Notes: generated by a model from the sequence alone, not told the origin. Numbered from the stretch's first letter, positions 8,621 through 58,651 are shown. The stretch is DNA of 64,000 nucleotides from Dimorphilus gyrociliatus (GCA_904063045.1 CAJFCJ010000002.1:1448422-1512421); one strand, 5' to 3'. Numbers and translations are program-made.

Positions 8621-9030
8621 ACGACGAATCGTCAGTATTATTTCCACCAATAAATTCTATTTCAATAAAACACTTAACATTTTCAACATATACAATATAC
8701 ATATATATATTAGTATATAAATATATATATATATAAATAAATACGTATTTATAAATAATATATATTTGAATATGCTGTGTATAAACAGTATTTATAAACG
8801 TCTATATAAATATTATAAATAAATACGTATAAAGTATAGTGCGTTAACATAAATTAATCGAAAACGCGCGTAAACGAAAATTATTGCATAACCAATCATA
8901 TCCAACTAGCTTAAACATAAAGTACGCACAATTTTAAAGCAGTGCAACAAAAAACAATGCTAAAATATACAAAGAGATAGAAAAAAAAACAATTTTCCAT
9001 TCGCTCTCCAAAGAAATGTACAGAGTTAAA

Positions 9031-52952: not shown

Positions 52953-55900
52953 ATGTCGTAAGTAAACAAAAATTTCATACAAATTAATATTACAACTTTT
53001 GATAAACAGGCAAGAAAACCTCGATTGGAGAACTTCAGGTTTACCTAAAAACTGTCTTATCGTTAAACCGAATGGAGAGGCAAATTTTAGTCAATTCATA
53101 AATGAAAGCGGTTTGTCAACACATCATTTTCAATCTATTATATTCATTTAGCTAACACTTATTAAAACAGAGTATAATGTTTCCGCGATCTCTTTCAATC
53201 AAACGGAGGATCTGTCCCGTTCCACCAAAAGAAATTTGGTAAATCATAAAACTTACTTAATTAAGACGCTTTTTATTTAGTTTTTGTATTTTATAGCGTT
53301 CAGAGCAACGAAGGAGAATATCATCTATTAAATTTGGTACCTCAACAATCGATAATACTATTAGTCCAGTAGTGGAATTTAGTGAAAGTCGCACTTTTTT
53401 AAAACAAGTAAGTCATTTCGAATATAATTTTGATAACTAAAGCAGAATAATCACTTAGGCTTCTACTTCATATGATAAGAAACTATGTAGCCCTCTTTGT
53501 CAACCTATTGTTAAAGTGGCACGTATGTCAGAGGTATGTTCAAACATTTGTTACATGATAGGTGCGATCTTGCTAAATTACGTAATAAAAACAAAAAACA
53601 GGCTAAAATTAGAAGAATGACGCAGTCACCCCATCCAGCTATTTCACCTAAAAATGAAGATGATCTTAATAATTCGATGCTTAACGATACAGTTCCAAAA
53701 ATTAATTTTTGTGTTCAAACATCTTACGAAGATAAAAATGGAGGCTCCCCTCACAACAACAGTAAAACATTCCACAACGAGAGAGTAGAGAGTCCACTCC
53801 CTAATACTCCAAAATTAGTTTTGTTTAATAAAAAATCATCTCAAACTTGCAAAAATGAGCTTACAAGTAAACTTGATAGCCAAAAGGATAACCAGACTAA
53901 TAAAGAGAATCATTCTTTCAAGCGAGAAGAAACGAATGTTGACATTGCAAATGATTCAACATCCCACGAAGATACATGTCCTTCCCGGCTAAAAGACTTA
54001 ACGGAAAGGGACTTTTCTTCAATTGACGGCACACCAAGTAATTTCTCTATTGGGGAAAAATCAGGAACATCAGACAAGCCCACCAAAAAGGAAGCCGTCA
54101 CTTGTAGACGCTGCAAGAAAATTATTCTTAGCAAAAAAGTTGAAAAAATCCAAACTGAAAAGAAAAGTGCTGCCTCAGTGAAAAAGAAACCATCACATAC
54201 TAATCTTGAAGAAGATGGAAGTCAAGAGTCGACTATTGATATGCAAACCGATAACTTATTTTCTGAAAAACAACCCGTTCGAAAACTTCAGTTAGTCAAT
54301 GAAGATGATAGTGTAATTCCTGAAACAAGGTCGAAGAAAAGGGTTTCATCCGAGAAAAAGATAAAACGAGTTTATCGTAAGAAAAAACGATCTGGATCTA
54401 AATCTTCAAATGCTGATTTGACGCTTGAAATTAATTCAATTCTTGAAGAATCACTCATTGTTCCAAGAAATCATAGTCTCATGAGCAATTTTCATGATGA
54501 AGATATACATCCTACTGCTAAGGATGTTGATTCCGGTGACAAAAGGGTAGCAAGGGAAAACCAAGACGAACAAATCAATGACGGACCATCCTTAAATAAA
54601 GAACCGTTCGATGATGAAACAAAATACAAAACGGAAAAAACATCTAGAAGAATTAGAGAAAAGACAATAAATGACGAATTAGATGTCCATAGCGAAAAAG
54701 CTTCCAAAAAAGAACGTTTGCTGAATGAAAAGACAGCGGGAAATAGAAAAGAGTCGAAAGGCGAAGAAGAACTTATAAACAGGGAAGCTTGTTCGAATGA
54801 TTGGGCAGACGAAAGACATTCACCTGAAAATGAAGAAGTTCCGGCAAATAATGACGAGGAAACATCTGTTGTTGGAGATAGAGAAAGTTTGTTAAATGAA
54901 GTAGAAAATTCGAAATTAATAAATACAAGTGTCGGTAGTAGTGAGAAATTAAAGAATGATACAGAAGACAATGGATCAGTGAATAAAGAGGAGGAGGAAG
55001 TAATAGCGAATGAAGAAGTTGAAGTATCGGCAAATGAAGAAAAAGGTGAAAAATCAATAACAGAGGATGAAGAAAGATCTGAAGTTAAGGAGGATAATAT
55101 GGCAGAAGTCGAGGAAAATAGTACTTTTGTAGATAATTCTAAATTGAGGAACGAAGCTCATTCTGGGAAGGAGTTTGAAAGCAGGGAAAATACAATTTTC
55201 AAAGAAACTGATGCCGATGGAGAAGTATTGAAAAATCAAGAACACGAACTGTTAGAAACAATATCTGACACGCAAAATTCAAACGAATCCTTGAAATTAT
55301 CTAAAACGCCTGAAAAAGATGAGTGTTTAGATAACTCTTCAAATCTAACTATGGTCATCACAAGGCGTCAGCGTCACATGCAAAATGAAAGTAAAGAAAA
55401 ACTCCATGAGATTCCAAGTTCAACAGGAAAAAAGAATAAAAAAGGTAAAAAGTCGAAAACAATTTCTCAAGGAGCCTCTGTATCGAAACCAAAGAAAGCT
55501 GTTCGTATACCAGAACAAATTGAAGAAGAAAATGATGATAATAAAAGTGTCGATTACGAAAATAGTCAGGTGACCAAATCAACGCCAGCGAGATCAATTC
55601 AAAATTTAAAAAAATTTAAACCTACTGAAGGAAAGGTAGATATTATCGAAGCTAAGCAATCGTCATTAATTGGGGGTGATTCTGAATTGGATAATAATTC
55701 TAACAACGAGGCCGTTCCGGAAGCTGATATGACTCTTACTGAAGAGAATACAATAACAGATAATAATGTAACGTCAAGGCAATCAGAGTCTGTTCATCCT
55801 ATTTTAGATATTCGGAAATCTCTAAGGAGTAGCAGTAAGAAAAATTCTTTTGCGGTACCTGAGCAGCCTCCTATCAGAAGTGTAAGGAAAAGTAAAAGAA

Positions 55901-57817
55901 CTAATTCTCACGCAAATGATGAACAGACTATGACTTCTATAACTAGTAGCTCTAAACTCTCCGACTTGTCTAAAATGTCAACAAAGCCAGCAAAGAAGGC
56001 GAAAAGTAAAAGTACACAAAAAAAGATAAACTCATTGTCAAAAAAATCCAAGGGAAACTATCGATCTAAATTATCATCAATATCAAATTTTGATGACTCG
56101 GATGAGCTTTCAAGTACGAAACGCTCCTGTAGTCGACGTATTTCAAAGAATGTTTCTACTCTCCTGGTTGATTCTCCTGATAGAAGAGACGATACATTTA
56201 CTAGAATCTCTAGATCTACCCGATTTAGTCACTTATCAAGTGTTAATTCAACCCGAAAATCTTTCTCCACTATGTTGGATGATGATACTATAAAAAATAG
56301 AGAAAGTTCTCAGTTTTCAACAAAATGGAGAGTTAGCAAAGTTGATGCAATTCGACAATCAATTCCCGATGAAGGAAAGAAAAACTCTACTTTAAATAGT
56401 ACTCAAAAGAGTTCAAAGTTAATAGTAATCGAACCTACGCCAGATAATACTAAAGAAAGTATTTCGTCTACGGATATTGATAATACAACAAACCCAAGAA
56501 TTTCCTTTTCAACACAGAGCTTATACGTATGTAAATTGCGTTAGTAGCATTTTTCTTATTATATTATACACTTTTAATAGAATATACGTGAGGAAGAAAG
56601 CAACAATGAGGTCACCTCTTCGTCAACTGTTTTGGAAGCTGAAACGATTATTCAACCGAATACAGCAAATAGAACAAACGTTTCATTTACACCAGTAAAT
56701 TTTTTGTCATCAACACCAATGGTGAATGAAAATGAAATTCCATTGGAAACTCCACCGTCTAGAAAAAAACCAGAAGAGAAAACAAACTCGGCCGATCTAA
56801 CAAATTATAAATTCCAAAAAAAGAAACGACGTGAAACAATATTTGTGCCAAAAATAACCGATTCGTCGAAAGGTTTAAGACGATCAAAGAGGAAACGTGT
56901 TAGACCTCTTTTACACGAATGCGGTGAACGTATTAAATATACTTACAATCCAACAGGTCAATAGATATTTATATATATAAATCAAACAGAAATCTCTAAA
57001 TAGCTTCTTCATTTTGTCACCCTATTTTAGCTGGTTCTTATGAAATTGATCAAGTTATCAAGCCAAACAAAGATAAAAAGAAGGGTTTAAGAAATTCAAT
57101 GGCAAGTAATAAAAGAAGGATTGTTGCATTGGAAAAATTGGAAAAAAAGAGAGATGTAGAAAATACAAAAATACGTTTTGCTAATAAAACATTACCAGCC
57201 CAATTAGTAACAAGAGACAGTTTACCTGGTAATAACTCTTTTGAAGTATCGATAAGAGGTGAACGAAAAGTCAAACGTATGTACTTTTTTTTATATATAT
57301 ATATTATACCGTCTAAATAATAATTTTTCTTTTCTATTATAAAGATTTAATCGAAAGATTTAATAGACATGTCGATTTTGACGATGGTCCAATGATTGTT
57401 AAACCAACAAAGTCATCTGCCATAAATTATATACATATTAGAGGCGGTGCTACTCATTTATTACCCGCAAGCAAAACTGAAACTACAGTAATAATTTTTC
57501 TATATTAATACTTTTTTTTTATTCAACAATTGCCAGTTTTTTAATGTTTATTAATTTTTCTTTAGTTAATACTACTGTATGGAAAAATACAGTTCTTTCT
57601 CGAAGATAACGAAGGTTACTTAGACGCCGGAGATTCTTTAGAAATTCCTTATGGTTTGATTTTTTTTTCTTACGTTTATCAATTTATTTAAAGAAGTTAT
57701 ATATAAAAGAAAAGACGTTAAGATAAAAGATAATATATGTTTTATTTTTCAGATGTAAATGTTACAATAGAAAATCTTCGTCGTGATCCGGCAACATTTC
57801 TCATTCACGAAATTTAA
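52953..57817 (+). CDS. CENPC: Centromere protein C
   Basis: N-terminal MSQENLDWRTSGLPKNCLIVKPNGEANFSQFINES (resembles the Mif2/CENP-C Mis12-binding segment), a long low-complexity acidic then basic region, the CENP-C motif GLRRSKRKRVRPLLHECGERIKY and a C-terminal cupin (LYGKIQFFLEDNEGYLDAGDSLEIPYDVNVTIENLRRDPATFLIHEI). About 10 exons. Confidence 0.86.
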
Positions 57818-57848
<31 letters not shown>

Positions 57849-57982
57849 GAACAAAAAAAAGACAAAATATAACAATTGAACTTTCAAACATATACGCTTT
57901 CATATCTTTTCTTTTTCAATAATATAAATTATTAAGGCATTACTTCATAAAAAATTACCTGTTTTTAGAAAGAGTATAATTT

Positions 57983-58651
57983 TTAATGATGTCTATGATT
58001 TGATGAAAAAGTTGCTGGACTACTAATTCTTCGAAGTGGTTCAGCAGCAAGAGGTGATAGCATTGTCTTTGTTGTTTTTGGTCTTGTTACTTTGTCACCG
58101 AGACCCCAACTGTTTCGCCTCGCTTTCAAATCGCTCGCCGGTAATTGAAGAAGGCTTCCTGGATATTTTCTTGTTACTCTTGGTGACAAGTTTCCTTGCA
58201 TCAAGTTTCTTGAATAGAGTAATGATGGAGGTGAACTTTTTTTTAAAACCTTTTTCTTTACTCTTGGTGAAGATTCTGTCGAAGCGCTTTTCTCTTCTTT
58301 CGGTGGAAGGAACTCCCTTAAAACAGTTTCGAATTCTATAGACCCTCGTATTCTTGGTGATTGCGGATCTTCGAACAAGTTTGGCATTGAAGATGTTCTA
58401 TCATCAATACTGACATGTTTAAGACTCGAGACGATATCGGGAGTTTGAAGTGAACTAGAAGATCTTCGAAAATTTTTATCAAATTGAGAAGTAGATAAAG
58501 AGTATTTTCCACTATTTTTTTGAGGATGTATTGCTGTCATACTTCTTTTCAATCCCATAGGAATCGAGTCCAAATGATGAATTCTTATAATTGGATGTTC
58601 ACTAGAACGTCTCCTGTTGTTAACTGTTTCAATTTTATCTAATTTCTGCAT
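57983..58651 (-). CDS. Orphan basic Ser-rich, probably disordered protein
   Basis: Uninterrupted 222-aa ORF in 30% GC DNA with many RRxS and SP motifs; no recognised domain. Confidence 0.62.
   Translation of the reverse strand: MQKLDKIETVNNRRRSSEHPIIRIHHLDSIPMGLKRSMTAIHPQKNSGKYSLSTSQFDKNFRRSSSSLQTPDIVSSLKHVSIDDRTSSMPNLFEDPQSPRIRGSIEFETVLREFLPPKEEKSASTESSPRVKKKVLKKSSPPSLLYSRNLMQGNLSPRVTRKYPGSLLQLPASDLKARRNSWGLGDKVTRPKTTKTMLSPLAAEPLRRISSPATFSSNHRHH

Follow-up and report, generated by a model that had tools for sequence, protein, structure and literature searches.

A CENP-C motif without its tryptophan, maintained by selection, beside a CENP-A with an aromatic tail in Dimorphilus gyrociliatus

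The CENP-C motif has the consensus RRSxRxRxxPLxYWxGERxxY, and its Trp is among the most conserved residues at the interface of kinetochore and centromere; in vertebrate systems, mutation of this Trp weakens the binding of CENP-A nucleosomes. In a stretch of 64,000 nucleotides from Dimorphilus gyrociliatus (the whole stretch is called the window, and positions are counted from its first letter), a CENP-C-like gene was identified in which the Tyr-Trp pair of the motif is replaced by His-Glu. The question is whether this motif is real and functional in the CENP-C of the species, and how CENP-A nucleosomes could be recognized with it.

The large upstream exon of the locus matched the annotated D. 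gyrociliatus protein DgyrCDS1263 (P0001, 1400 aa) in a word-index search. The gene is composed of 11 exons, is spliced and expressed, and lies in AT-rich eukaryotic DNA with short introns. P0001 was mapped exactly on the window, with pieces that start at residue 3, the first two residues lying further upstream:

53011-57817, plus strand: CENP-C gene DgyrCDS1263
53011-53109, 53170-53238, 53297-53407, 53459-53533 and 53602-56526, plus strand: CENP-C exon pieces 1-5
56581-56956, 57031-57276, 57345-57487, 57566-57653 and 57753-57817 (stop included), plus strand: CENP-C exon pieces 6-10

A (GA)n microsatellite (57818-57846) follows directly after the stop, and the contigs of the public runs end there. 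Further downstream, a convergent gene was observed on the minus strand (57983-58651), with a Ser/Arg-rich ORF of 222 aa that is 70% identical in a related species.

The variant motif sits in the exon 56581-56956, and positions 56872-56946 of the plus strand translate to GLRRSKRKRVRPLLHECGERIKYTY. Three features were defined here:

56872-56940, plus strand: variant CENP-C motif GLRRSKRKRVRPLLHECGERIKY, residues 1193-1215 (translation; in-register alignments to human, chicken and P0004)
56890-56892, plus strand: Arg1199, matching by position the anchor arginine in the core pattern RxxxxPxxYW (pattern of PMC4830207; putative function)
56914-56922, plus strand: His1207-Glu1208-Cys1209 (CAC GAA TGC), replacing the canonical Tyr-Trp-Arg (translation, alignment)

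Compared with the canonical motif, the substitutions are Y to H, W to E and the next R to C, with E to L at the residue before the pair, and PLLHECGER of D. gyrociliatus was aligned by HMMER with PLEYWRGER of human and chicken CENP-C. The basic Arg-anchor half RRSxRxRxxP was present as RRSKRKRVRP, in register with human and chicken CENP-C and with P0004, and G-E-R-x-x-Y was present as GERIKY, against GERIDY in human. The aromatic pair [YFW]-W was absent from the D. gyrociliatus motif, with His-Glu in its place. The first-pass annotation of the window had reported CAC GAA TGC at 56914-56922 with this same translation, an intact Arg half and GER, and a replaced aromatic pair; the bases were reproduced exactly, both halves were seen again in translation and alignment, and the alignment placed His-Glu at the Tyr-Trp positions.

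Public data were compared over positions 56400-57900 of the window. The motif exon had zero letter differences in the spliced transcript contigs of two studies (X2 and X5) and in a genomic contig (X1), and all five introns from 56527 on, with GT..AG ends, were confirmed by spliced transcript contigs. Since the spliced contigs carry no mismatches, the bases are real and the gene is expressed; a check of the bases had been advised by the first-pass annotation, and the two independent transcript studies and the genomic contig all gave the same letters. Together with the same 46 residues in the related species (see below), this identity excludes an error of sequencing or assembly. A local compensated frameshift was also considered as the origin of L-H-E-C, and the alternative frames, read by eye, gave no obvious support for it. 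In addition, run X6, a coral metatranscriptome, contained spliced CENP-C pieces nearly identical to positions 56400-57258 of the window (3 differences in 202 nt), which suggests that a Dimorphilus-like worm was present in that coral sample.

For the identity of the protein, the last 231 residues were searched against solved structures (PDB), and the best sequence match was human CENP-C (E 9e-4), followed by chicken. The entries aligned in register with the motif were human 7xhn and chicken 7by0 and 7bxt, with PLLHECGERIKY in register with PLEYWRGERIDY. A HMMER search of 1.84 billion representatives returned two meaningful relatives besides the protein itself, P0002, which is the orthologue of the related species, and P0004, which alone among the significant CENP-C matches comes from outside the lineage (E 4.5e-4). 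The remaining listed match, P0003, is an unrelated repeat protein and not a CENP-C. P0004, a protein of 284 aa, combines a textbook motif, PLEYWRSERLDY, with a cupin and scores 68.5 bits on PF11699. The worm protein is collinear with it from the motif to the final residue (BLASTP 6e-14 over 231 residues), by which a further domain could be placed:

57345-57814, plus strand: C-terminal cupin-like (dimerisation) domain, in three exons, collinear with the PF11699-positive part of P0004

The cupin-like region had weak matches to Cupin_2 and to an archaeal cupin in PDB, and its nearest named clusters by protein-language-model features, a lead only, all carry PF11699. Pfam CENP-C_C (PF11699) itself gave no match exon by exon, on the full protein or on its C-terminal part. 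For residues 1170-1400, AlphaFold2 run on an alignment of two rows gave a model with a mean pLDDT of 36.8, too low for use. Judged from the in-register alignment with human and chicken and the collinearity with P0004, DgyrCDS1263 is a CENP-C orthologue with a divergent cupin-like domain, so that the identification made in the first pass is supported. Like canonical CENP-C/Mif2 (human, chicken, rat and yeast structures), it has a long disordered N-terminal part, a single-copy gene, and RRSxRxRxxPL...GERxxY about 100 residues ahead of a C-terminal cupin-like domain; it differs from them in that the aromatic pair and its flanks are replaced and the cupin falls below the PF11699 threshold.

Whole-genome searches were run exon by exon, with limited sensitivity. 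A profile built from the worm protein and P0004 matched only the five C-terminal exons of this gene in the whole assembly, and the motif exon alone matched only itself. Elsewhere in the assembly, a canonical P..YW..ER motif preceded by a basic anchor was not found; the eight pattern matches, casein kinase 2 among them, are due to chance. The genome-wide PF11699 scan was empty, and a genome search with P0004 returned nothing and missed even DgyrCDS1263, hence it was uninformative. From these searches, one CENP-C-like locus, a single orthologue, is concluded for D. gyrociliatus, and the specialised paralogue that had been offered as one option in the first-pass annotation is unsupported.

The motif was compared with the CenpC sequences published by van Hooff et al. 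2017 (PMC5579357; FASTA supplement, parts 1-3 of 7). The 30 species covered are eight deuterostomes, Drosophila, two nematodes, Trichoplax, three unicellular holozoans and fifteen fungi. In this part of the supplement, the second aromatic is Trp in all 30 species, the divergent fly and nematodes included, and it is Glu in Dimorphilus. The first aromatic is less constrained in the same set, being Pro in Ciona, Ser in Drosophila and C. elegans HCP-4, and Arg in Brugia (PMC5579357). Within these sequences, Drosophila Cenp-C, nematode HCP-4 and Ciona resemble the worm in a lineage-specific remodelling of the second half of the motif. They differ from it in two ways: Drosophila, the nematodes and Ciona retained the Trp and lost the first aromatic, whereas Dimorphilus is without the Trp; and G-E-R is absent in fly and Ciona, whereas Dimorphilus retains G-E-R...Y fully.

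The orthologue P0002 was obtained from the Logan assemblies of runs SRR23372228 and SRR23372229; the exons of the relative were analysed singly, and D. gyrociliatus was represented by the database protein P0001. The P0002 contig is syntenic with the D. gyrociliatus locus, with the 70% identical convergent neighbour downstream. The two species are deeply diverged, with 40% identity over the disordered exon and dS of about 1.0-1.2 in the better-aligned exons. One block around the motif is unchanged:

56818-56955, plus strand: 46-codon block K1175-T1220, protein-identical in both species (codon comparison)

Within this block 12 synonymous and 0 non-synonymous differences were counted, and dN is 0.35 in the remainder of the motif exon. 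The H-E-C codons of the relative are CAT GAA TGT, with only synonymous differences in the His and Cys codons. As none of the 46 residues changed against 12 synonymous differences at a dS of about 1, the variant is maintained as a working element, with no decay. By this codon comparison the H-E-C version is under strict purifying selection, and the Trp-less motif appears to be a functional nucleosome-binding element rather than a decaying one, nucleosome binding itself being its presumed role. A word-index search with the C-terminal region retrieved this protein and its counterpart in the relative, and no CENP-C from any other annelid or spiralian. The 54-nt intron 56527-56580, which separates the large disordered exon from the motif exon, is missing in the relative (L030, about 8700-8720), where the frame reads through ...STQSLY/KIHEEE..., and this points to its gain or loss between the two close relatives.

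As to what a CENP-C without the pair would have to bind, the arginines of CENP-C bind the acidic patch of H2A/H2B (PMC6776904, PMC5371998, PMC4830207). In the human complex, the CENP-C tryptophans lie between R131 and L135/L139 of CENP-A, with H2A L108 and H4 V60 completing the groove for the aromatics (PMC6776904, PMC5371998). Even human CENP-C shows only a modest selectivity for CENP-A in vitro (PMC5371998).

When the genome was scanned with Pfam histone models, a single CENP-A-like gene was revealed (G000:C6:2808788-2809093, DgyrCDS4875, P0005). It encodes an H3-like histone fold (PF00125, 102 bits) with an L1 loop two residues longer than in H3 and containing Trp, and its best named matches are the CENP-A of vertebrates and lancelet. 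In the annelid histone census the same gene is the cenH3 of the species, and it is highly expressed at cleavage stages (PMC12153100). A divergent H3-like gene located on a short contig (G000:C200:26092-26469) was rejected as CENP-A; its N-tail is canonical to K27, its fold is altered, and it ends in ...LLVKKL.

The CENP-A tail GVQHMW is hydrophobic and non-canonical, with V-Q-H-M-W after R-I-R-G where most of the CENP-A sequences retrieved have x-x-x-G-L-G. On human CENP-A numbering, V corresponds to L135, H to E137, M to G138 and W to L139 (Trp130 of the worm). A Cys replaces the near-invariant Ala of L-A-R-R-I-R-G, equivalent to A129. DgyrCDS4875 is like other CENP-A/cenH3 proteins in the lengthened L1 with Trp, the histone fold and a hydrophobic extension past RIRG, and it differs from the human tail LEEGLG and the yeast tail QFI in being V-Q-H-M-W, terminated by Trp and without the G-L-G that most of the vertebrate and many of the non-bilaterian sequences retrieved have in common. 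The related species, in the same sample that gave its CENP-C, has an identical GVQHMW tail, and over 93 codons of the last CENP-A exon the two species differ by 1 amino acid, whereas synonymous differences were counted at 44 codons. Such constraint, on this comparison of two species, is unusually strong for a CENP-A. The independence from CENP-A raised in the first-pass annotation is therefore unlikely, as a single cenH3 is present, strongly constrained, and has kept a hydrophobic tail. Tails are also variable in lancelet, sea cucumber and priapulid, which keep the CENP-C Trp. In the census table, a CENP-A-like variant of Capitella ends in G-I-Q-I (PMC12153100). Because tails vary in Trp-keeping animals, an odd tail alone is no proof of co-evolution. 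The co-evolved tail suggested earlier thus gains from the non-canonical GVQHMW conserved in the relative, loses from the variable tails elsewhere, and stands as possible only.

Other kinetochore genes were also detected. The H2A acidic-patch residues look canonical in the translated gene, read by eye. Candidates were found for CENP-N (G000:C14:1409484-1409702, 26.1 bits with a cut-off of 25), CENP-I (G000:C19:3354722-3355740, 26.5 bits summed) and CENP-S (G000:C9:2254154-2254312, 63.6 bits). From these matches the CCAN seems to be present in the compact genome, and the kinetochore seems unlike the reduced ones of flies or nematodes. At the R-G loop which is read by CENP-N in human, D. gyrociliatus CENP-A has Q-G-N and the relative H-G-N. 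Three tandem SANTA-domain (M18BP1/KNL2-like) genes (G000:C6:2272800-2276850) share an N-terminal block C-x-H-x-H...EELNVF...LFHKIQ; a CENP-C-like (CENPC-k) motif, sought in them as an independent test of co-evolution, was absent from all three.

Human CENP-C has a central region with the residues R522, W530 and W531, and a candidate for a comparable element was found upstream of the variant motif in the worm:

56299-56343, plus strand: candidate second nucleosome-binding motif RESSQFSTKWRVSKV, R1020-V1034, central-region-like, with putative function

The block reads R-E-S-S-Q-F-S-T-K-W-R-V-S-K-V in D. gyrociliatus and R-R-S-S-F-L-S-S-R-W-R-I-S-K-V in the relative. P0001 and P0002 have a single Trp in common, W1029, and P0002 contains no other Trp in its 1043 residues. 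The vertebrate central-region pattern is RxSxxPSxWW (PMC4830207), and R1020, S1022, S1026 and W1029 match it, while the Pro and first Trp positions do not. The likeness to the vertebrate region thus lies in R, S, S and the final W at equal spacing and in a comparable distance, as the block is about 170 residues ahead of the variant motif, against about 220 in human; WWRV of mouse also resembles the R-V/I after the Trp. The differences are Phe/Leu for Pro and Lys/Arg for the first Trp. The pattern R.S...S..W occurred in 0.3% of composition-preserving shuffles, the match having been found post hoc. In humans the central region plays the dominant role (PMC6776904, PMC7333888). In mammals it is the chief reader of CENP-A, and the CENP-C motif is secondary. 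The region is described as conserved in mammals or vertebrates only (PMC7333888), so that its likeness in a worm would be convergence. Homology of the upstream motif to the vertebrate central region is unlikely; the block is not classed as a member, and it may work alike. The first-pass annotation had seen no second central motif, which is questionable given the likeness of residues 1020-1034 to the vertebrate region and the position of the only conserved Trp among them. In the disordered exon (55873-55908), another basic stretch of R-x-S-x-R type was observed, IRSVRKSKRTNS, with LRRSTRKNS as its counterpart in the relative; it is not followed by an aromatic residue, and this stretch could make a further contact to the acidic patch or to DNA.

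Altered centromere recognition, proposed in the first-pass annotation, is a fair reading, the change being fixed and selectively maintained. The rewiring of recognition is regarded as real; as its mechanism, either the interface would have co-evolved or the task would have passed to the upstream motif. We prefer, at somewhat less than even confidence, that the variant motif docks through its Arg anchor and contacts a co-changed CENP-A tail through His-Glu-Cys. The basic half RRSKRKRVR, with Arg1199 as anchor, would still dock on the unchanged H2A/H2B acidic patch, and His-Glu-Cys would make a new kind of contact with the remodelled tail G-V-Q-H-M-W, of which the widespread form is G-x-x-x-G-L-G. 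The bulky aromatic would have moved to the histone side, with CENP-A Trp130 at the position of L139, on which the CENP-C His could stack, and the Glu could pair with the Arg at the position of R131. We infer both the binding of nucleosomes by the variant motif and this side-swap geometry; a complex prediction with CENP-A 30-130, H4, H2A and CENP-C 1185-1240 scored 0.33 against a mark of 0.34 and favours neither binding nor its absence. Further points speak against a co-changed interface: His and Glu are polar, while a hydrophobic tail normally calls for a hydrophobic reader; the upstream Trp motif could read the tail instead; and the conservation of the block might come partly from a nuclear-localisation signal or from another partner.

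Gains coincide on the two proteins in both species, with Y to H and R to C in CENP-C, and His at the E137 equivalent and Cys at the A129 equivalent in CENP-A. In the extreme form of the switched hydrophobic knob, the His and Cys gained on both partners would build a metal-bridged or redox-sensitive interface, which is very improbable. To our knowledge, metal-bridged or redox-sensitive centromere recognition is undescribed in any organism.

A division of labour between the two motifs is the main alternative, rather unlikely on present evidence, and it is not mutually exclusive with the co-changed interface. The H-E-C motif would be a general acidic-patch binder and the W1029 motif would read the CENP-A tail, with contact of its Trp and the following Val/Ile to the hydrophobic tail, in parallel to mammals. 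W1029 as the sole Trp common to both species, the fit of R(-9), S(-7), S(-3) and W(0) to RxSxxPSxWW with R-V/I following as in mouse WWRV, the rarity of the pattern among shuffles, the comparable spacing and the still hydrophobic CENP-A tail all agree with it, as does the dominance of the central region in humans (PMC6776904, PMC7333888). It is weakened by the post hoc nature of the match with its substituted Pro and first Trp positions, by the convergence needed if the region is confined to mammals or vertebrates (PMC7333888), and by the fact that a plain acidic-patch binder has no obvious need for an invariant H-E-C. The same invariance weighs on a relaxed reading of the tail, in which CENP-N or other CCAN readers would specify CENP-A and the block would be kept for docking on the acidic patch of any nucleosome, for nuclear import or as a binding site of a regulator. 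Drift at the old aromatic positions is predicted by it, whereas H, E and C did not vary over a dS of about 1; the Trp is also kept in the 30 other species of the covered part of the supplement, many with a full CCAN too (PMC5579357). Relaxed reading is improbable. In its favour are the CENP-N-like, CENP-I-like and CENP-S candidates of the genome, the strongly basic character of the block (KKKRR...RRSKRKRVR), by which it looks like a nuclear-localisation signal, and the modest selectivity of human CENP-C in vitro (PMC5371998).

That the gene is an artefact, a pseudogene or a non-centromeric paralogue, and that a canonical CENP-C lies elsewhere, is scarcely credible and already largely refuted. 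This reading could draw on the failure of PF11699 to score the protein and on the limited sensitivity of the exon-wise searches, in which the P0004 query missed DgyrCDS1263. Against it stand the letter-identical independent transcript assemblies, the intact frame, the synteny and the strong purifying selection, and also the joint profile with a canonical CENP-C, which matched this locus alone, the matches to the canonical motif being due to chance.

What is new here is a CENP-C motif that has lost the otherwise invariant Trp and is maintained beside a CENP-A with an aromatic tail. D. gyrociliatus is a tiny marine annelid, culturable and with a compact sequenced genome, and its lineage keeps CENP-A and parts of the CCAN, yet constrains Glu at the position of the CENP-C motif Trp. 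It would thereby offer a natural test of which contacts the reading of CENP-A needs, of how a reader and a histone tail can co-evolve, and of whether the task can pass to a second nucleosome-binding motif.
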